From Podarcis melisellensis (lineage: Eukaryota): DNA of 64,000 nt. The notes below the pieces were generated by a model. The model searched no databases. It was not told where the DNA came from and saw nothing but the letters and a program-made list of their open reading frames with translations. The stretch's first letter is position 1, and every line of letters starts with the position of its first letter. The DNA lies in NCBI GenBank assembly GCA_964234715.1, contig OZ174279.1, one strand, 5' to 3'. A program made the position numbers and the translations under genes. Positions 17,949 to 64,000 of the stretch are shown in pieces.

Positions 17949-17998
<50 letters not shown>

Positions 17999-18374
17999 TT
18001 TTTATTTATACCCCGCCCACCCCAGCTCAGAGCGGCTTACAAGCAATAATAAAAACAAGATGAATGATTACAACTTAAAAACAAAAATAAAATACAACAT
18101 TAAAATAATGGAACATTAAAATTTTAAATGTAGCCTCATCGCAGGAGGAGAAGGAAAAGAAAGGGGGGAAAAAGAGAGGGAGGGAATCAAATTGGCTCCA
18201 AGCCAAAGGCCAGGCGGAACAACTCTGTCTTACAGGCCCTGCGGAAAGAAATCAGATCCTGCAGGGCCCTGGTCTCATGAGGCAAAGCGTTCCACCAGGC
18301 TGGAGCCAGAGTTTAAAAGGCCCTGGCTCTGGTTGAAGCCAATCTAACTTCCTTAGGGCCTGGGACCACTAGGG

Positions 18375-19730
18375 CAGTGTTTCCCAACCGGTGTTCCGCG
18401 GCACACTAGTGTGCCGCCGGACGTGTGGGAGGGAGGCGGGCGAGTCGGGCTAATCCTCCGGCCCCGCTCCCCCGGGGAACGTGCCCCGTCATCCGCTTCT
18501 GCCTTGCTCCCTGTGACAGGAATTCCCCAAACTGCATCAGCATCTGCCGCTTGCCCAGCAGCCCCGGCGCTGCCTTGCGCCCGGCGCCCCCGCCACCCTC
18601 GGCGCAGGGAGCGAGGGGCGCGCAGGCAGGCGCTGCCCGGCGGAGCGACGGCTCCTTCCGAGCGGCTGGCAGTGTCTGGGCATGACTGGCCTCCCGCCTG
18701 GTCCCGCGGCGGCTGCAGACGCGGCCGAAGCAGCGCAGGGAAGGAGACGCCCGGCCGCCCAGCCCCGCCCCGCACGCTCCCACTCTCTCTCGGCGGCCGG
18801 GGAGCGGGGCCAAAGCGGGCCCCCACCTGAGTGGCGGCTGCGTGAGCCAATAGGCGAGCTGGGGCAGAGGGGGAGGCGGGGCTCCGGAGAACAAAGGAGG
18901 GAGGGGGCACCCGGGAGAAGGGGGCGGGAGGAGCGGGGAGCGCGGCGCTGCGCCCGGGACGCCCCAGTTCCGCCGGGTTAGAAGCCGGCGGCCTACCTCT
19001 GCTGGCCGTGGAAGGCAGCCGGGTCTGGGTCGCGCCCCGAGAGTGGCGGGGTCCGCGTACAGCCTGCCCTCCAGGCTGGGAAGTGGCTCCTAGGCTCCGC
19101 CTGAAGCCACGCAGAGCCCGCAAGGCGCCCTCGGTGCAATTTGGCCGGGGCAAAAGGCGAAGCTCTGGAGGGAAAGGCGGCCGGATTCCCCTCCTCGGTG
19201 GGTCCGGTGGTCTCCCGCCTCCTCTGAGGAAGGGTCTCTTCTTCAGCTTTTCTGATCCTTCGTGGCCCCGTTGGGAGAAGCCGAAATAAATAATGGCCGT
19301 GCCATTAAAGTTCTCTCTTTTATAAAAGGGATCCTAATAGAATCGTAGAGTTGGAAGGGATCCCCAGGGCTATCCAGTACTGTACAACCCCTGCAGTGCA
19401 GGAATCTCAGCCATAGCATCCATGGCAGACAGACATCCCACCTCTGCTTAAAAACCTCCAAGAAGGGAAAAACCTCCCGAGGGAGACCATTCCCCTGTTG
19501 AACAGCCCTTACCAGCGGAAAGTTCTTTCCCATGTTTAGTCAAAATCTTTATTGTAACGTGAATCCACTGGTTCGAGTCCTACCTTCTCTACCTTCTATG
19601 CTGTTACTATTTTTTTATTTTTTTTTACATAAGTAAAAAGTGACCTTTCCCCATCTGGCATGGTGGTGTGCCTCGAGATTTTTTTCATGAAACAAGTGTG
19701 CCTTTGCCCAAAAAAGGTTGGGAAACACTT
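18375..19730. mobile_element. Non-autonomous hAT (Charlie/Buster-type) DNA transposon carrying GC-rich internal cargo
   Basis: Left TIR CAGTGTTTCCCAACC (18375-18389) and right TIR GGTTGGGAAACACTT (19716-19730) match 14/15. Identical 8-bp TSD CACTAGGG (NNNTANNN) at 18367-18374 and 19731-19738. No transposase ORF. Confidence 0.9.
19337..19590 (-). mobile_element. CR1 LINE 3' fragment nested inside the hAT element
   Basis: Reverse of a CR1 3' end (atagaatcgtagagttggaaggg...). The minus-strand translation LVRAVQQGNGLPREV...LEVFKQRWD matches the CR1 ORF2 C-terminus pattern. Confidence 0.8.
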
Positions 19731-20639
19731 CACTAGGGTGTTGTTATTTATGGACCTTGAGGTTCTCCGTGGGGCATACCAGGAGAGGCGGTCCCGTAGG
19801 TACGAGGGTCCTAGGCCGTGAAGGGCTACATTTGTATTTGAGACAATACAGAGCCAGGCAGATTTGGTGTGAGGGCTGAGGAGAGAATTCCTCCTTTTGT
19901 AGATGCTTGTAATGGATGCTTTAATTGAGATCTCTGTATTGCAGGGGGTTGAACTAGATGATTCTCTGGGTTCCTTCCAACTCTATAATTCTATGATTTT
20001 ATGAAGATTTAATCCTAAAAGCTATACTATAAAGATAAAACTACTAACTCTGGAATAGTTCCAGTGGCATTACAGAAACAAGCACATCAGTTTACACTAT
20101 TTTAATTCTAATATTTGGGTAAAAGATGAGTCTTCAGTAGGCCTTGACTAGCAGCACATAGTAATTTTTTTGACATTTAACAGTTACATCCTGTGCAAAT
20201 GCATTCAACAAAAACAAATTTTCCCTTCCCCAGGCATTTGAAATCAAATTAATTTGTGCTATTTTGTTATAGCTAGCTGATGTGGAGTTGTAATAACTTG
20301 GGGGCGGGGAACCTCTACCCCTTTTTATAGTGCAAATAGCACTAGGTTTGCACTGCACAGTTTTAAAATATATTCAGCTTTTGGGGGAAAGACCATAATT
20401 CTGGTAGAATACAAATTTGTTGAACTGGTCCCTGTAGTTGTGCTTTCTCAGCCTATTTCTGTGTCTCAACTTACTAGGGAAGGTGCAAGAGCAGTCCTGG
20501 CCTGCTTATTTTAATGATTAGTTGGCAACCTTATTAGGACACCTACCAACTTGGAAGGGCAGAGAGCTCTCACACAAGTGGACCTTTTGCCACACCAGCT
20601 CTGCATCTCCCTGCCATGCCGACAACTACTACTTATTTC

Positions 20640-21450
20640 GTTAAGGGCGCAGGAAATATACGAGGGACGGGGGGAGAGAGCTGTTGCTTGTAAGGGCTGA
20701 AAGCGCCTCCTTTCGCCTACTAGGTCACAGCATAACACCGTAGCTGTCAAGAAGGCGTTGGAAATGTCGCCGAGAAGACTACAAGCCCCAGAAAGCTTAA
20801 AGCCCCATTCTGGGTTTGCTCTCCCCGCCCTCTTGTCTTTGTGGGGTATTTCTCCTCCCCTCTCCTCGGTTTTCAACGGCGCTTCCAGGCCTGACGGTCG
20901 TTAGGCGTTTGCCGTGTTCGAACAGGCCAATGGCTGCGCGGCCACGAGGCGGCGGCGGGTGGGACTATTTTGCAAACAGCCAATAGGCTTTTGCAGTTGA
21001 AGCGACCAATCGGAAGGCAAGGCGGCAGATATGAGATGGCGGCGGAGTCGGCTCTGAGGGGGAGAGGAGGAGAGAAACGAGTGGGCAGGTAGGTCGGTTG
21101 CTGTGTCCGCCGGGCGGGCCGAGGTTGCGTGGCCAGAAGACTTTGAGAAGCTGAAGTGGGTCAGGTGAGGGCGGGGTTGAGACAGAAACAAGGCATAGGG
21201 TATACGAGCCTTTCGCTGTGGTGCCTCAATCATTTGTGTGGCCTTGGGACGTGAGGCCTGTGGTCCTGCCTCTAGGGCAAGCTGTTTCATAGAGCGGAGG
21301 TGCGATGCTCTGAAGCCTATCCCGTCTGCTCTTGCTCTTTGCCCAGGGGCTGAGGAGAGCGAAGGAGGCGGATCTCCCTTCTCCCTCTAGACGCGCCTGG
21401 GCGAGGAGCAGAGACGGGAGTGAGTAAGGGGCGACATGACAGAAGAATCT
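20640..21450 (+). promoter_or_regulatory. ARHGAP19 CpG-island promoter
   Basis: CpG-rich. CCAAT boxes at 20927, 20980 and 21006; TTCGAA at 20917-20922; GC boxes; YY1-like AGATGGCGGC over the ATG. Confidence 0.8.
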
Positions 21451-24400
21451 GATAACATTACGCGTGGCATAACAGATAGAGGAAGGTTTTCTCCCTCTCT
21501 CAACACTAGGACGAGTGGCATCCAATGCAGCTGAATGCTGGAAGACATAGGACAGATGAAAGACGAGGTCATAATTGGTCAAATTATGGAACTCGCCCTG
21601 CCAGGAGGCAGTGATTGACACTAACCAGTATGGCTCGAAAAGAGGATTAGACAAATTCATGGAGGAGAGAGCTGTCAATGACTGCCAGCCATGATGTGGC
21701 TGTGCAATGCCTCCACAGTTGGAGGCAGCAGTGGTTCCAAATAGCAGTTGCTGGAAACTTCAGGAGGGAAGAGTAGGCTCACAGTGGTTTCCCACTGTGA
21801 GAACAGGTTGCTGGACTAGATCCAGCGGGCTTGTCTTATGTTCTTATGAAGGGAAATCCTAGTGATTTGGGACTGGGAAAGGTTTTGGGGTGGTTGTTGG
21901 GTGGGATGAAGGAGAGATACAGAGGATGTCAATGTTCCAATCTAGTTGACATGTGGTTCTTCTAGATATTTATTTTATTTATTGCATTTATATACAGTAC
22001 CAGTTTTTTCTCCAAGGAGCTCCGGGTGATGTCCATGGTTCTTCCCCTTCCTCATTTTATCCTCAAAAGAAGCCCATAAGTAGGTTAGTGCTGAGAGACA
22101 GTGACTGGACAGTGTCACCCAGAGAGCTTAATGGCTGAGTGAGGAATTGAACCCTTAGTTTCCTAGGTTCTAGTCTGGCACTAGCCACTAGGCCACACTG
22201 TCTTTCCATGTGCCAGTGTGCACACCTAAAGTACAAAGTGTGGTTTTTCTGCCCTAATATCAAAGGAATAGTGTTCATACAGAGCTAATGTGGTGTATTG
22301 GTTAGTGTAGGACTAGAATCTGGGAGACCAGGCTTCATATCTCTGCTTGACTCACTGGGTGACTGTGGGCCAGTCAACCTCTCTCAGCACTAATCTCAGG
22401 CTTGTTGTGAGGCTAAAATGGGGAGAGGAAGAAGTATGTATGCCATCTTTAGCTCCTTGCAGAAAATGTGGGATGTAAATATATCAAGAAATAAATGCAA
22501 TGTGTTAACAGGTTAATAATACAACCATTGCTACTTCAACCATTATTGGAACGATACATTTCAATACTATGCAAGAAACAAGTCAGAATAAAATTTCTTT
22601 TTTAAAATACATTTTATTAATTTTCCAGAAGACATTTCCAAAACAATTGGTTCCCCACTCCCCCAGAATGTGTCAAATTTTCCCATAAATCTATATGCAT
22701 AATTGGTGGGTGTCACTCATCAGGGCATTTATTTGAATATTTTATAATGGGATGCCATATTGCAACAAAATATTGGTTGTATCATTCAGGTCGTGTATTC
22801 TCTTAGTTAGTTTCTCAGATAAAGCAAGTGTCCACATATTCTGTTTCCATTGTGTGGTGTGTAGATGATCAAGTCCTTTGCAGTCTTTTTTAATAGTTTC
22901 TTTTTGCTATGAGTAGTTGCGCCACTACTAAAAGAAAGGTGGTAAGTTCCATGTGTAATAAAATAAAAATTTCTATTCTATAAACATCCTCCTTGCTTTG
23001 TGAGCTTTTGATTTTTTTTTCAGGGCTTTAGCATGTTTATTCTTCGCATCCTGTAGGTTAAATGGCTTCTTTGCTCAAGCTTGCTGGAGTCTGCTGTAGA
23101 GTTAATAGTTTATTTTCTACTGTATTTTTCAGGGAGCACCAGTTCTTTTTTTTAGGAACTGCAGTTGGAGCAATTCTGTTTGATCTTACAGTGTAATCTT
23201 CAAAGTCATCCATTAGCTTAGGCCTTTGATACAGACAGCATGACTACGGCTCTGTTTGTAAGAAATGCCAAAATGAATGCTTAGTATTCATTTCTCCACA
23301 ACAGGCATGTTTTATTAAGCAGTTGGTTCTTCCATAGTTTATTTTCTGACCACCTTTCACTGTTAAAAGGCCTTTCTTCGCAATCACTTTTAATCCCTTT
23401 ATTCCTTGAAATATGGTCCTGCAACGCTCTAATATTGATCCTCTGGAAGTTGGAGATTACAGGAGGAAAGTTTTCTTAACACTTATTTTATGGCATGACC
23501 TTAAAGGGCTGCAATCCTTCAGATGCATGAAGTGTTATCCTGAGTTGCAGGTATATGTACACATAGTTGGTGAGGATTAAAATCAGAGGAAAATGAAATG
23601 CAAAAAGTATGAACAATAATAATTATTAGCTTCTCATTCTTCAAACAGTAGTTGATGATAGCACAAGCATCCTAGCACTGATACAAATATACCATGGTTC
23701 AAACCACAGATTACAATTTGTCAATATTTTATATGTTAAGCAGACACTGTTCTGTGCTTAATCAATTCTTATCAATATTTCCCCCCTGGGCCAATTGCTC
23801 CTTGCAATATCTTTTATTGTTAAATTAACTGTTCTACTTATTAATATCCCTCTGTACCTGCCGTGACTGAACAATCATCTTCTACTGTGGCCTTACCTCA
23901 AATGCTTGTGGGTGTTCTTCACCTTATTTATATTTATATGTATTTTATAGCCTACTCCACCCTGTAATCCCATGTTGAATTACATACAAGTAACATGCCT
24001 TGCCATATATTGAAGCATATCAAAGCAAGCAGCATCAGTAACAACACTGCAGTGGAATGCATATTCTTAATTAATCCTGTACCCCCAAAGACCTATGCAA
24101 AGAAGTGTGTCTTGACCCACTGACAATGTAGTTACAATAATACGGCCAGATGCATCTTAGAGGAAAAGCATGGCACAAGTTGGGGGCCACATCAAAGAAG
24201 GCCCTCCCACACTCTGTCATGGCCCAAACCACCTGTAGGATCTACACTGCAGACCTTAACACCCAGGCGAATCAGTACGTATTAGAGCTGCTCTTCAGAT
24301 ATTTCAGCTCCAAGTATTAGGTACTTAAGCACAGGGTCCTAAGCACCAAGTTAAAAGTTCTGGAAGCTGTCAGAGGCTCAGCCTTGTGCATGACTGAAAA

Positions 24401-52385: not shown

Positions 52386-52929
52386 GAGGTAAGGTAAGGG
52401 CATATGTGGACCCCATTCTCTCATCATCAGTTTGACCACCTTCAAGTTAAATTCCAAACCCCAGCAGCTGTGGATAGTCTAGTTTCCTGTAGATTAAACA
52501 CGCCCACACCCACCCTACTAGACCTGAGAAGCTGATGCGATTCCAGGTATCTTAAGGTTACATCCCTTTGTTTTTCAGCCCCATTTATACTGAAAGCCCA
52601 GGGTGTTCTCAGATTCCCTTCTGTTCCTCAAAGGGCATGGCACCATAGCTTGCCAATTCACTTTAGAAGAGTCTTCCTTTGAAACTTACACCACCCTGGC
52701 AATCGAACTAAAAAGCATGCATTTATTCTAGGGGAGTTGGGTGGACTCAATGATGGGGTGAGATGATGGGAAAAGCCAATATGGTTTGTTTTGTGTTCTT
52801 GTATAGATCGGATTGTGACCTCAAAGAGCTTTACATCAAAACACAACCTATCGACAGAAATCATACACAAAAAAACCTGTTTATCACAAAGGACCCCTCA
52901 ATCCCATTGTGTGTGTGTCTTGAGTACGG

Positions 52930-54520
52930 AGGGCGACTCTTCTTCTCTGGGCCTGTGTGTCTCTGTCCTGCTACTTTCGGACGCTCTTCGCCAGTTTTTC
53001 TGTGTGTGGATCTTTACAGGACGCGTGACTGCGTGTCTACACGACAGACTCTCAGAGCGTGTGCTTCGCTGGGTGGGTGTGTATACACACGTACGTGTGT
53101 GTACACGCGCGTGTATAGCTCTCTCTTCCGCGGAGGTGTCTTGCCAATTGGCTGGTGATTCCGCGAGTGCGTTATGTGGGAGCCTCCTCTCTGCTCCCTG
53201 GGCAGACAGTGCGCGCCTTTCTTGTCCCGTTTCGCCCCCTCCCGGCCCTCTGTCGGAGAAGAGGGTGGGTGGGTGGGTGGAGGTGGCGGGGAGAGATGTG
53301 TGCGCCCGAGGCGGGTGAGGAGACTGAAGGGGGGACGGGGGCGGAGCCAAGGCTGCTCCTGCTGTCTGGGCTTGATGGATGAGACGGGGGCTCCCGATGT
53401 GTGTCTTTGAGAGCGAGGCAGCGAGACGCGAAGGCAGCGCGTGTTCCTGCGCTTAACCCTCCCGGGCGGCCGGAGCTTCTTCCTCCTGCGACCCGGACAG
53501 GCGACGAAGGCGCGAAGTGGAAGCAGCAGGAGCCGGGGTCGCCCGCCTGCGCCAGAAGGCAGCCTCTCCACGCCGCCTGGGCGAGCGCGCCGTGCGATCA
53601 TGTGCGGGGCAGCCCCTCGCTAGCCAGCGCAGGCAGCATGGCTCCCGCGAAGCGAGCGGCGTCGGGCGGCGTGTGGCTGCGGGCGGGAGCCTGCCTCTTG
53701 GCCTGGGCGGCCTTTTGCCGGGTCCGGGCGAGCGCCTGTCCCGCGCCGTGCGCCTGCAGCGGCACCACCGTCGACTGTCACGGGCTGGGGCTCCGCAGCG
53801 TCCCCAAGAACATCCCGAGGAGCGCAGAAAGGCTGTAAGTGCTGGGGGGCGGGGCGGATCGCGGGCCTCGGAGGGGGAGACGTTTGCGACCCTGGGGGTC
53901 CTGGGGGTGGCCCCTCTCTCGGGCAGGGGCTCCGCCGGTGCCGGGCGCCACACCCCCTCTCCCGCCCTCACAATGGAGCCCCGCCGCTTAGGATGTGCCG
54001 CTGCGAGACGCGCTCAGACGGTCCGAGGTGGGGGGCAGACAATGATCCCTCTGGGGGAAGTCGGGACGTGGGGAGGGAGTTGGGTCGGGCTGAGGCAGCC
54101 GCCGCAGATCCCTTCGGAGTCTCCGGGAACAATCACTCGATTGCCTTTGTTAGGGAACTGCGGCGCGCGCCCGTGCGGGTGTGCCCCCCTCCCAAACCAT
54201 TGGGTGGGTGTGTAACGTCTCCTCAACCCAAACCGCCTCTCACACGTGCACCAGAGTCCGGTGGCCTGCAGGTCTGGGTCAGGTTTAGAGCAGCGCGGGT
54301 CGGGGGGGGGGGGCCGCGGGATTCCTGCTGGGCGCGATCCGGCCGTTGCGCTGCGCCTCCTTGCAGCGCGTGAGATGCCCGGGACCAGGCTAACTTTAGC
54401 TGCACGAGCTGGCTGCTCGGCGAGGTTCCAGAAACGGGGAGCACGCACCGTGGACGTGTATGCGTGTGCTGGCGCGTTCACGCGGGTGTGAATCTCCTGT
54501 GGGCCGGCTGGCGGGGGCTG
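52930..54520 (+). promoter_or_regulatory. SLIT1 CpG island / promoter and 5' UTR
   Basis: Dense CpG and high GC around exon 1; CCAATTGG near 53144, GC boxes and a (GGGT)4 tract. Confidence 0.8.
53638..53834 (+). CDS. SLIT1: Slit homolog 1, coding exon 1 (signal peptide plus LRR N-terminal cap); the rest of the gene lies beyond the window
   Basis: Strong Kozak cagc[37 protein letters not shown] reads as a signal peptide, followed by [33 protein letters not shown] (LRRNT). The 197-nt exon ends at a phase-2 donor ct|GTAAGT. Position downstream of ARHGAP19 matches human synteny. Confidence 0.93.
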
Positions 54521-57282
54521 CTTATTTTCTCCAATTATCTGCATGCAGTGTGTGTGTGTTCGTGTTCTGTCCGCTCTAGTAAGACTGTCTGGGGAAACTG
54601 CCTCCTCTTCTGTGGAGCTAGATGGATGCCTTTTGGGGGCCCGTCCTTGGAAATGGGAGCTTACGAGTGAGAGGAGAGGGTCAAGTCCTCTTTAGGAGAG
54701 TAACCCCCTTTCCCACCCCTTGTATAACTACTGGCCACACCACATAAGTGTATCTGACACGATAAGGGTGCACCCACGCTATACATTGATTTTCCCCAAA
54801 CAATCATGGGAACTGCAAATTGCATACCCCGAGCTACAATTCCCAGCACCCTTAGCAAACTACAGCTCCCAGGATTCTTTGAGGGAAGAAATGGGCTTGA
54901 ACTGAGGATGTGACCTTTGAGACAGCTCCGTGGAGCCAGAGGAGGTGGGTGTGGAGGATGGAATCTGGACCGTGGAGTCTTGAGTGCCCCTTGCCGCCTC
55001 TTCCAACAGAAGGGGGCTTGCTGTCTCTAGCCAAGCCTGCAGCCCTGGTGGCTGTCCTTTCCCATCTCTCCCTCTGCCCCCTCTTTCGACAGTTTAATGA
55101 GGGGTGAAGAAAGAGGATCCATGGGGGGGGGGAGAGAAATCCTCTCCCCATGATCAACCCTTCCCACTCAGGCAATATCCATGGCAAAAGCAGAATACCA
55201 GGCAGATAAAGGGGAGATCAATTGGGGAGGGGTTTGAACATGGGGTGGAAGAGACAGACAAGGGAATGGCAGCCCAGGCACTGTTTCATCTCTGCATGTG
55301 AGGTTCTGAATTATCCAGAATAAAGGCAGGAGGGGAGGGGAGGGAATGGGAGCTCAACTGGAACAGGGGCTGATCATTAACGCACACACAGACCCCTCCT
55401 CATTACACACTTACTTAATGCTGGCTGGAATGCTCCTCATTCCTCAGCAGCAGCAGCAGCAGCCTGACGGTGTCCATTGCTTTGGTGGGGGGTGCAAAGG
55501 GAAGTAAAAAGCTGGAGGGGATGCTAAATAATTCACCAGAATGCAGCACTGGAACGTGCTGTTTAGGCTGGGGGGAAACAAGGGGGCTGAGTGGTTGGAT
55601 TTATTGCAGTCAAGCAGGATATTCCCTCCTTGCACCTCTTAAGGCCTTGCGATTCTTTCCGTTTCTTTTCTGCAGAAAGCAGCTTGAAACGGAACGGACA
55701 AAGTCTGTAGGAAAGAGTCAGGACCCCTGAGCCTGCCTTGCAGCTCCTGTGCAATTGCTGTCTGGGCTCCCCCAGAGCCTCTGCTCAAGCCCCTTAGTCT
55801 CTGTTCCTAGCTTCCCTCCAGCCTCCCCCAACCTGGCGCTCTCCAGATGGCTTGGACTACAACTCACGTCAGCCCCGGACAAGTACAGCTTGTTGCGGTC
55901 CCAAACATCTGGAGTGGGAGGAAGGCTGACCTACTGCTCTTCCCACCACCACCACCCAATTTGCTGTCTCTTGATCTCCTCTGAGGAATGTCTCCCTCTG
56001 ACGCCAGACAGGCTGGGACGGGGCTTCATGTGTAGGATACTCTTTCAGATTTATGCTTGACTGCAGGGTAACCTAGAAAAGAATGGGGATGGCATGTGGT
56101 GTAAAATGTGAATGTGGAAGATTCCTATGAGCATCAGGTGCAGCAGAAACTTGGTGGGCAGGCAGGGGGTGCTCTCCTAGCTACCCAGAGAGATGCTGAA
56201 CCTGAAGTTAAGCAACTTTGCATAAAAGGCAGTACCATTAATATTCTCGCAGCGGGTAATTATAGCAGTTTTATTTAGATGCAGCCCTTTTCCTGGTCTC
56301 TTGTGAGGGTAACATCTTGTCTCTGGTCAGCATGGTACAAGAAAACTCCACATCAAGGCACTAAAGCTTTCCTGCTTCTGGCTACCATCTTCTTTGCTCT
56401 CGTCTGAGCTCATTATTGGACCAGGCATGGAGATATGATCCATCTACCCAGCTCCAAGTGCAGCAGTGCAGTGGGAGCACAACAGTCCCCCCTTCCCTTG
56501 AAGTACTGCAGATTCTAAGAGTTTCAGAAGCCATATCCCAGGTGCTAAGGCAGGCCTGGTCCGTTGTGTGTCGTGAGGATCTCTTACAAGGCAATCCACC
56601 CATTCCTATTATCATTTCTTCTACAAACCAATTAGTCCCCTCAGAGTGAGCCTAATTAGGTCAGGGCCCTGTAGATGCTCCTATGCACGACAAAGCAAGC
56701 TTGGTGAACTCAGTTAGTAGCACCGCGGGACACCTTCTTTAAAAGGGCACCTTCTTTAATGGCATTTCCTTCTCTGGCACCTTAATTACCTTCATTGAAG
56801 TTGTTATCATGGCACAGCCATGGGGAGCTGCTTTGTGAGTACAGAATGAGTGTGCTGCCCACAAGCATGAAACTTGGCTCAGATCTGAAATGCCAGAACA
56901 CCAGGAAGGGCTACCATTCCTGTTTTGACAAGAGGGACCTCAATTGCCACTCGCAGTTGGAGCACTACTTCTCATGTTCATCCTACTTCAGAGGTGGGGA
57001 ATCTTTTTGACCAAGGGGGCCAGATTCTGTATCTGTCTCACTCTTCCATGGACTAACTTTGACAGGTGGGCAGGACAGCCCATTGAGAGGGTAAGACCTG
57101 CCCACTCTGTATGGGCATAAAGAGGAATACATCTTCCCTGTATCCCACACATAGACTGGCCCCAGAAGTTTTACCGACATCTCTCCTTGAGAAAGAAATG
57201 GGGTGGGGAATGGTGTTAGGATTACAAAAGCACTGAAAACTTCCTTCCACCATCTGATGAGAAATCTGACCATTAGATATCT

Positions 57283-61850: not shown

Positions 61851-62150
61851 CAGTGGTTCCCAGTTGGCGGTCTGAGGACCCCAATAAGTTTGTGGCACAT
61901 ACCCATCAACTGGCCAGGATATCCCATTTTGGGGCACCATGCTCTTGTATGGCTCACATGACTCATGTGGGAATGTAGTCTGGAAGACCCACGATCCGGT
62001 TTTGCATTAGGATGTGTTGGAGGGTATGGTGGCACCATTCACATTACAGAAGCTATCACAGAGAGATCAGCATTTTCAAAAGTAGGGGTTCCATGGCTTG
62101 GCTTATGAAAAACGGGGGGTTCTCTGTACTTAGTTAGTTGGGAACCACTG
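61851..62150. mobile_element. Older hAT MITE
   Basis: TIRs CAGTGGTTCCCA / TGGGAACCACTG; degenerate 8-bp TSD ccatcaac / ccatagac. Confidence 0.7.
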
Positions 62151-64000
62151 CCATAGACAATTAAGCACGTAGGTTCTTCTGCCTTGTCCACATATCTGTG
62201 TTATGTATCTTCTGAACTCATCCCCATTCTGTCCTGTGTTACACTGAATGTATCCCTCTGGAGCACGTGGCCTCAGTGCAAAGTCCAGGGATGCGGTGGG
62301 CACTCTGGAGAGCCCCCCAAAAGAAAAGCGGGTGGCAGTGATGGGCAGGTAGCAAGGCAAGCGTCTGAGGGATGAAAAATGACTGCTGACCAGGGCAATT
62401 GCCCCAGTCTGCCTAATGGAAGGGATGGCCCTTTGGAAGTGCCATGATGCTGCTAAGCTTACCACAGGCACCTGGTTGGCCACCATCAGCACAGAATGCT
62501 GGACTCGACAGGCCTTTGGCCTGATCCAGCAGGGACCTTCTTATGATCTCACTTCATGTTTTCTCAAGAGTTTAAAAATGAGCAGCCTCTTCCCCAAGAT
62601 TCACACCTGTCACTTCCATAGTCTAGCGAAGCTCTCTTTCCTACCCTTTCCTCTTGTCTTGTATCCCTGCTTCATGGCATGCTGCTTCCCTTGTGCAATA
62701 TGTGCGCTGCCACAGCCATCCCCTGATCTAGGCAACAGTTGCAGTATGTTCCCGCTCTCCCTTTTTGTCAGAGTAAAGCTGTCTCTTATCGTGCAGCTTC
62801 ACCGATTCCCGTATGTTCCATTCCAAGTTGCTTGCTGTTTGAATAGTGAAAGGCTGCTTCAGAGACTTTGAGGGTTGAGTGTCTCCTTAATCTCTGGATG
62901 GATTAGGCAAGAAATCCACAGAGTGTAGGATGCTGCTCAAAAGGGAAGCATGGGAAGTAAAATTGGAATGGTAAAAAACTGCCTTCTGCCCACATTTAAT
63001 GCCAGCCGTGCTGGAGAGAGCAGAACGGCAGGTGTGGTGCTGGAACGAACCCAGAAGTGTTTCACAGCTTTGGCAGCTATCAGACTCCAGCCTGCAACCT
63101 AAAACATAGAAATAAGGGTGTGTGTGTGTGTTTTTTTGTGTGTGTGTGTGTATAGAGAGAGGGGTGTGTGAAGGCTGAGCATGCTTGGATAGCATTTAGC
63201 CTCCCAGATGATTGAGGTTTCTGGCCCTTTCCTCATATTGCTTTGGAACTGGGCACAGGATTGCCAATGGCATGCCAGACGCCTAGGGATTAAGCTGGCA
63301 TCAATTCTAAACAAGCCGCTTGGGGGCAAGAGTTGGTTGAGGTGCATTGGGCTCCTGCTTTGCTAGCACTGCCACAGCCCGCAAGTTCTGAATTTCTGTG
63401 CTTGTTAGTATTGTGCGCCTAGGTAAATGGATCAGATTTCAAGGGAAATCTTTCCTCATTTTTCCCTTCTGTTGCTTTGTGGTACTACTGAGGAGGGGGA
63501 GAGTTTGTATTGCAATGGTTAGGAGCCAAGAGAAAGTCCCCTTTCCCGGTATTCGCTCACATATGTTCACATTGATGTATTGCAGTAAGCTAGGCATCGC
63601 AAGTAGCAAATGAATAACAGGCCCTCTGGTTTCCTATTGGACTTTATGTGAGTGAGTGAGTGAGTGAGTGAGTGAGTGAATGAGTGCGTGAGACAGACGG
63701 ACAAGGCAGGCAGGCAAGTACATCTAGCTTATCTAGCTGAAATGGGAGTTCAGATCCCACCAGGGAGCTTCCTAGCTTGGCAGAAGGTGCTCCCGTGTTG
63801 AAACAGTGTGGTAGGCTTGTGGTGGATCACACTGGCAGTCATGTTGCATTTCCTTTCCTTCAGATCCTTCCCTGGGTTGTGGGGAATTTGCAATTCTATT
63901 CCAGTTTCTCCCTTCAGCTACTTCCCAGGCAGATGCTGTCTATGCATTGCCATGGCAACGCTGTGTTCGCCTCTCCATGGAATTGCATGCTGGAAAAATA

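Follow-up and report, generated by a model that had tools for sequence, protein, structure and literature searches.

A CpG-island-bearing hAT element of Podarcis melisellensis is one copy of a young multicopy subfamily, possibly founded by capture of host DNA

Much is known from plants about DNA transposons that carry cargo. The Pack-MULEs of rice and other plants, for example, are DNA transposons that take up and amplify the 5' regions of genes (PMC8277862). In animals, cargo-carrying DNA transposons have been catalogued as mostly single-copy: a survey of 100 animal genomes yielded 370 Pack-TIR elements, of which 208 were hAT elements and only four were multicopy, as with hAT-N8_XT of Xenopus tropicalis, whose three copies carry 291 bp of the CAPSL 5' untranslated region (UTR) (Tan et al., 2021; PMC8277862). 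hAT elements are recognized by target-site duplications (TSDs) of 8 bp and terminal inverted repeats (TIRs) of 5-27 bp (PMC3517528), and the Buster family among them has the TSD consensus nnnTAnnn (PMC3517528, PMC3499496). TcBuster favours transcription start sites and CpG islands (PMC3499496), and the Mar elements of Drosophila, which belong to the Buster group, are transposable elements of the miniature inverted-repeat type (MITEs) and plain deletion derivatives of an autonomous parent (PMC3517528). Here we describe an element at positions 18375-19730 of a 64-kb stretch of Podarcis melisellensis DNA (contig OZ174279.1; the whole stretch is called the window below), which an earlier note had proposed, from the sequence alone, as a hAT transposon carrying a captured promoter fragment. 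The element belongs, as one of its copies, to a young non-autonomous hAT subfamily that is multicopy, and it is not a private capture.

The ends of the element are those of a hAT transposon. A perfect 8-bp duplication, CACTAGGG, brackets TIRs of 15 bp (left TIR, CAGTGTTTCCCAACC), a length that lies within the range known for hAT elements. The duplication fits the pattern nnnTAnnn at this one target site, where a consensus would need many copies, and the target site of the subfamily would, judged from these letters, be Buster/Charlie-like. A scan of the window for inverted 12-mers no more than 5 kb apart, with a perfect 8-bp direct repeat adjoining them, returned a single pair in the 64 kb, which contain no N, and none of 20 shuffles of the window, which served as the control, contained one. 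The TIRs and the TSD reported by the earlier note, together with their coordinates, are thereby confirmed, and the pair is unique in the window. In addition, the motifs GTGTGCC and GGCACAC occur nowhere in the element but in the outermost 50 bp of its left end and the outermost 65 bp of its right end.

An autonomous hAT transposase comprises a BED finger, a DDE/RNase-H-like core and a C-terminal hAT dimerisation domain. Pfam assigned no family to any of eight open reading frames (ORFs) of the cargo and flanks; it thus found no transposase in the element, nor is there one in the window, and in the ORFs of the interior Pfam matched no remnant of a transposase, a BED finger or a hAT dimerisation domain. 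With its nnnTAnnn duplication, short TIRs beginning with CAG and lack of a transposase, the element is of the non-autonomous hAT type; the earlier claims of a non-autonomous hAT element and of an interior free of transposase both stand, the former on the type of TSD, the TIRs and the Pfam-blank interior ORFs.

The copy number of the interior was read from public whole-genome contig sets of about 1.2-1.3 Gb from three organisms (runs X7, X1 and X5, from organisms D, A and C, respectively) and from RNA, with reads and contigs aligned to the window at 80% likeness. As the single-copy reference we took the bin 20059-20100, which had a depth of 11.4 in X7, 8.0 in X5 and 40.6 in X1; other single-copy contigs of the flanks had depths of 8.2-12.4 in X7 and X5 and 41-49.5 in X1. 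Against this reference, the interior (18425-19615) collapses in all three runs into contigs of 22-35 times single-copy depth, which, per kb, show five substitutions and one 5-base indel relative to the window and are thus about 99.5% identical to it. This corresponds to roughly 20-40 copies of the interior per lizard genome, as an approximate figure. One contig of X1, at a depth of 738.8, crosses from the interior into the left terminal region and covers 35 bases of it or more, and the multicopy interior is therefore attached to a hAT end and is not a host repeat devoid of TIRs. Several near-identical copies thus hold the whole interior, with one contig joined to the left terminus, as in a multicopy subfamily. 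The earlier note had taken the cargo to be special to this site, and this part of its claim fails, as some 20-40 near-identical copies with the whole interior occur in three organisms; it had also named an invariant consensus of a multicopy family as one half of the outcome that would speak against its reading, and such a consensus is what the shared interior contigs show.

The termini are far more abundant than the interior that they enclose. The bin 19633-19703, at the right end, amounts to about 0.75-2.5 x 10^4 single-copy equivalents, so that the termini are some 300-1000 times commoner than the interior and most copies of the shell must hold something else or nothing. Roughly 50 bp at the left end and roughly 100 bp at the right end make up the shell itself, which is common to some 10^4 elements, with the interior present only in some 20-40 of these.

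The insertion interrupts an older repeat, which looks like the C-terminal tail of the ORF2 of a long interspersed nuclear element (LINE), followed by the LINE's 3' end. The earlier note called this LINE an L2, a tentative name alongside CR1 or another clade. When the flanks are joined without the element and one TSD, a minus-strand open stretch ...LHGLGPSYLRDRLSWYAPRRTSRSINNNTLVVPGPKEVRLASTRARAF spans the join, and the frame, which reads ...RARAF*TLAPAWWNALPHETRALQDLISFRRACKTELFRLAFGLEPI* in the left flank, goes on after one in-frame stop as TLAPAWWNALPHETRALQDLISFRRACKTELFRLAFGLEPI*. Pfam was silent on the LINE tail in the flanks, where only the C-terminal tail of ORF2 is present. Other copies of this tail skip exactly 1364 bases (18366 to 19731), with 8 letters that fit on either side, and this skip occurs in contigs of all three DNA runs and in RNA reads. 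Contigs that enter 19731 from the right run on into the sequence of the left flank, and loose ends at 19827 mark where other copies of the LINE tail extend further. Both flanks are high-copy repeats; by summed contig depth, the LINE repeat amounts to about 4-5 x 10^4 single-copy equivalents. Because the paralogous LINE tails are uninterrupted at this point, all the DNA between the TSDs is a later insertion, and the element is younger than the LINE that harbours it. The earlier note had argued for an insertion from a reading frame that rejoins upon its removal, and the joined frame and the 1364-base empty forms both bear this out. Next to the A/T-rich tail at the 3' end of this LINE lies a perfect (TAA)16 microsatellite (17950-17998). 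The features of the element and its flanks are collected in Table 1.

Table 1. Features of the hAT element, its flanks and the contigs that cover its interior (positions in the window).
Feature	Position	Strand	Description
Left flank, older very abundant LINE-type repeat	18000-18366	-	End of ORF2 C-terminal tail, 3' UTR, A/T-rich tail
Left TSD CACTAGGG	18367-18374		Perfect 8-bp direct repeat with 19731-19738
Left TIR CAGTGTTTCCCAACC	18375-18389	+	Directly inside left TSD
Left subterminal region	18390-18424	+	Palindrome 18393-18422 with GGCACAC/GTGTGCC motifs; common to large hAT family
CpG-island-like, promoter-like interior	18425-19290		GC 72%; one CCAAT box, three GC boxes
AT-rich linker	19291-19336		In same multicopy contigs as GC core
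Repeat fragment inside element	19337-19588		From an unrelated, abundant interspersed repeat; both ends truncated
T-rich stretch with short tandem repeats	19589-19632		Still subfamily-specific; contigs of depth 469/334/992 reach 19587-19615
Right subterminal region	19633-19715	-	Two GTGTGCC motifs; common to about 10^4 elements
Right TIR	19716-19730	-	Pairs with left TIR at 14 of 15 positions
Right TSD CACTAGGG	19731-19738		Perfect match to left TSD
Right flank, upstream continuation of split LINE tail	19739-19827	-	Ends at 19827 in this copy
Interior contigs, X7 (organism D)	18431-19463; 19434-19615		Depth 404; 469
Interior contigs, X5 (organism C)	18431-19368; 19340-19587		Depth 246; 334
Interior contigs, X1 (organism A)	18425-18722; 18704-19364; 19337-19609		Depth 1027; 907; 992

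The interior of about 1.2 kb is a mosaic of an 870-bp CpG-island-like segment, a linker, a piece of a foreign repeat and a T-rich stretch. Indeed, 18420-19290 has a GC content of 0.72 and 89 CpG dinucleotides at an observed-to-expected (o/e) ratio of 0.79, as compared with 0.27 for the whole window and 0.20 for the left flank. The description of the interior as GC- and CpG-rich accordingly holds for 18420-19290, which is a true CpG island, and does not extend to the foreign repeat (19337-19588) or the T-rich stretch (19589-19632). Similarly, of the proposed likeness to a host promoter or first exon, the promoter-like CpG island remains, and no coding exon was recognized.

The embedded repeat stands apart from the rest of the interior in its abundance, with a depth of about 5-8 x 10^3 single-copy equivalents and loose ends at 19397 and 19588, where its other copies run on. 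An inverted copy lies in the flank at 19912-19990, and contig joints of the opposite-strands type, 19388/19968 and 19424/19912, link the two fragments. This repeat (19337-19588/19912-19990) is represented strongly and asymmetrically in RNA reads, with a mate-on-minus depth of up to about 800.

Searches with the cargo returned little. A protein word search with the longest ORF, of 266 residues on the minus strand, gave no match at E<=0.001, a tRNA scan of the element found none, and Rfam at E<=1 gave only chance-level matches, all of them outside the element. An identity of the cargo as ribosomal DNA, a small nuclear RNA or the tRNA-derived head of a short interspersed nuclear element is ruled out by these Rfam and tRNA blanks.

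How did a CpG island come to lie inside a hAT shell? We lean towards a single ancestral capture of host DNA followed by amplification, which we consider rather more probable than the alternatives taken together. In a single event at a promoter-like locus, through template switching or gap repair, a short hAT element would have taken up the host mosaic, in the manner of Pack-TIR capture. Transposition would then have multiplied the composite, to some extent independently in separate lizard lineages, and a transposase supplied in trans would have inserted the present copy by cut-and-paste into the 3' tail of the older LINE, duplicating CACTAGGG. The preference of a Buster-family hAT element for start sites and CpG islands would place such elements where gap repair copies promoter DNA. 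A host origin is supported by the CpG-island composition, with CCAAT and GC boxes, which contrasts with that of the termini, and by the doubly truncated piece of an unrelated repeat within the interior. A further hint of a host origin is record 19 of X7, of single-copy depth (8.7), which is about 85% similar to 18492-18694 and sits at one end of a contig of 1.4 kb. Another diverged relative of the cargo is record 5 of X1, at about single-copy depth, which matches 18704-19363 at about 90% and lacks 18909-19045. These may be old copies or relatives of the cargo, or they may be the donor locus.

Several observations weigh against capture. No donor locus was identified by blastn of the element and its joined flanks, which covered the 64-kb window and returned only self-hits and simple repeats. 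Nor was any exon, splice signal or protein homologue recognized in the cargo. RNA on the GC core is near zero (a depth of at most 2.8, from about 12% of one run), and these reads occur in one mate orientation only and are not assignable to any of the approximately 30 copies; as a check of promoter activity, the RNA reads gave no sign of it, and we build nothing further on them. The excess of shell over interior is equally to be expected of MITEs as compared with deletion derivatives, and the ratio is no proof of capture. Finally, the copy number is derived from contig k-mer depth, which is a rough measure distorted by GC bias. GC-rich DNA is usually under-sequenced.

The best-surviving alternative, which we regard as doubtful, is that no capture took place and that the element is an internal-deletion derivative, with a GC-rich interior that is the autonomous hAT element's own 5' or internal non-coding sequence, such as a promoter and 5' UTR. 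The presence of the same interior in all of the approximately 20-40 copies is as this would have it, as are the lack of a recognized donor locus, host exon or protein homologue and the numerical dominance of a MITE-like shell over longer derivatives, which is usual for hAT families such as Mar (PMC3517528). A derivative of this kind sits poorly, however, with an interior in which Pfam detected neither transposase remnants nor a BED finger nor a hAT dimerisation domain, with a GC content of 72% and a CpG o/e ratio of 0.79 that are unlike the AT-richer termini, and with an unrelated interspersed repeat, truncated at both ends, in its midst.

A composite or 'macro' transposon, in which two short hAT elements flank a host CpG island and their outer ends mobilise the whole block, appears very unlikely. 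The shell is abundant (about 10^4 copies) and Buster-type hAT elements favour start sites and CpG islands (PMC3499496), which makes two nearby insertions conceivable. Such an arrangement should leave its mark inside the element, where we found neither inner TIRs nor a second set of subterminal motifs, GTGTGCC being restricted to the outer ends; blastn within the window revealed a 28-bp palindrome as the only internal self-similarity of the element.

Less probable again is a unique, independent capture at or near this locus, in which case the cargo would have no counterpart except in the donor gene. The majority of animal Pack-TIRs occur in single copy (PMC8277862), and the window contains no second copy of the element; this reading is nevertheless contradicted by the depth of the interior contigs, at 22-35 times single-copy depth in three organisms and with one of them joined to the left hAT end. 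A chance arrangement of an ancestral CpG island between unrelated inverted sequences, for which one might cite the promoter-rich neighbourhood implied by a second CpG island 0.9 kb to the right (20600-21600), has next to no probability, being contradicted by a TIR and perfect 8-bp TSD combination that is unique in the window and absent from the shuffles, by the exact 1364-base empty forms in paralogous LINE tails, and by a family similarity that stops at the TIR.

The present copy is, by itself, an ordinary family member that is probably immobile. The sole mismatch between its TIRs is the outermost base, a T at 19730, which the earlier note had correctly read as T for G; by comparison of contig depths, the family majority has G here, which restores the 15th position of the TIR (a depth of 10328.8 of 10344.1 in X7, with the same picture in X1, X5 and RNA), and the T is private to this copy. 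In addition, 13 bases of the family majority, including one GTGTGCC motif, are missing here after 18424, where X7 has a loose end (7 contigs, agreement 0.97). The GC core differs from the family majority by five private substitutions, two of which are CpG to TpG changes (19135 and 19199). The terminal T, the 13-base loss and the substitutions plausibly make this copy a poor substrate for transposase. A contig of single-copy depth with the private left junction of this copy (18423) occurs in X7 only, and we build no conclusion on it.

The CpGs of the island are intact because the copy is young, at about 0.5% from the family majority, and its two CpG transitions fit ordinary methylation-driven decay. 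The earlier suggestion that intact CpGs reflect either a recent insertion or an unmethylated germline thus finds support for youth, and nothing shows an unmethylated state. The copy sets of the organisms also differ: at position 18734, T is found in the majority of the copies of organism A (depth 907 of 972), and organisms D and C have only C. This near-fixed difference is most readily accounted for if different master copies were amplified once the lineages had parted, and it suggests that the family amplified in part after related lizard lineages had separated.

The neighbourhood of the element holds further features. The CpG island at 20600-21600 (GC 0.57-0.60, o/e ratio 0.65-0.86), only 0.9 kb away on the right-hand side, lacks TIRs, does not resemble the cargo of the element, and may be a local promoter. 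A search of the window with the TIR pattern found only one other match, a MITE-like element of about 300 bp at 61851-62153 (TIRs CAGTGGTTCCCAGTT... and ...AGTTGGGAACCACTG), which belongs to a different, older hAT-like family and has no similarity to the element at 18375-19730 beyond the TIR; it is flanked by CCATCAAC and CCATAGAC, which match at 6 of 8 positions, as in a decayed 8-bp TSD. Within another CpG island, at 52900-54800, an ORF on the plus strand (53401-53838) resembles what we take to be a SLIT-family first exon, with a signal peptide and the first leucine-rich-repeat cap. With respect to this putative SLIT first exon, the hAT element is located about 34 kb upstream.

These observations mean that cut-and-paste transposition is able to scatter promoter-like DNA through vertebrate genomes, in this instance an 870-bp CpG island to some 20-40 places, and by a hAT subfamily that was apparently still amplifying after related lizard lineages had split. 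One may go further and speculate, as a tentative possibility, that the hAT shell of this lizard lineage, with its about 10^4 copies, is a serial capturer and amplifier of CpG-island promoters, with many cargo subfamilies at tens of copies each and with activity that outlasted the split of related species, as suggested by a majority variant at 18734 that is specific to one lineage. If so, hundreds of portable, young, CpG-rich and promoter-like islands would be scattered through the genome, some of them beside genes, and the Pack-MULE phenomenon would for the first time have a counterpart at scale in a vertebrate. Many such subfamilies, should they exist, would amount to a natural experiment on the methylation, decay and promoter recruitment of new CpG islands.

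Among described systems, the animal Pack-TIRs are the nearest. Like them, the element has a hAT shell that is non-autonomous, with TIRs and 8-bp TSDs, around sequence that resembles a 5' end or promoter and that, to judge by its CpG-island composition and embedded foreign repeat fragment, may not derive from a transposon, and like the multicopy cases among them, the composite has spread by transposition to unlinked sites. A Pack-TIR has an identifiable parental locus that lacks TIRs, and the present element is a candidate member of the group; a Pack-type origin is likely but unproven. It differs from the described cases in its number, with about 20-40 copies as compared with three in the Xenopus example, and in its cargo, which is a full-size CpG island together with a repeat fragment. 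If the cargo is host-derived, the subfamily would be an unusually successful case of a Pack-TIR. The literature consulted contained neither the TIR string nor anything specific on hAT capture in lizards or Podarcis, and the words 'lizard' and 'Anolis' are absent from the main text of the Pack-TIR survey (PMC8277862).

The resemblance to Pack-MULEs is one of behaviour. Pack-MULEs prefer GC-rich sequence. They belong to the Mutator superfamily, with a 9-bp TSD and long TIRs, and are found in plants, whereas the present element is a hAT transposon in a vertebrate. With Mar, the element shares short TIRs that begin with CAG, an 8-bp TSD with a central TA, a noncoding nature, a high copy number and recent mobilisation; unlike Mar, it holds a CpG-island-bearing interior of 1.2 kb that is unrelated to its termini. 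The kind of element described here is already known, and it is such a copy number that is rarely met in vertebrates.

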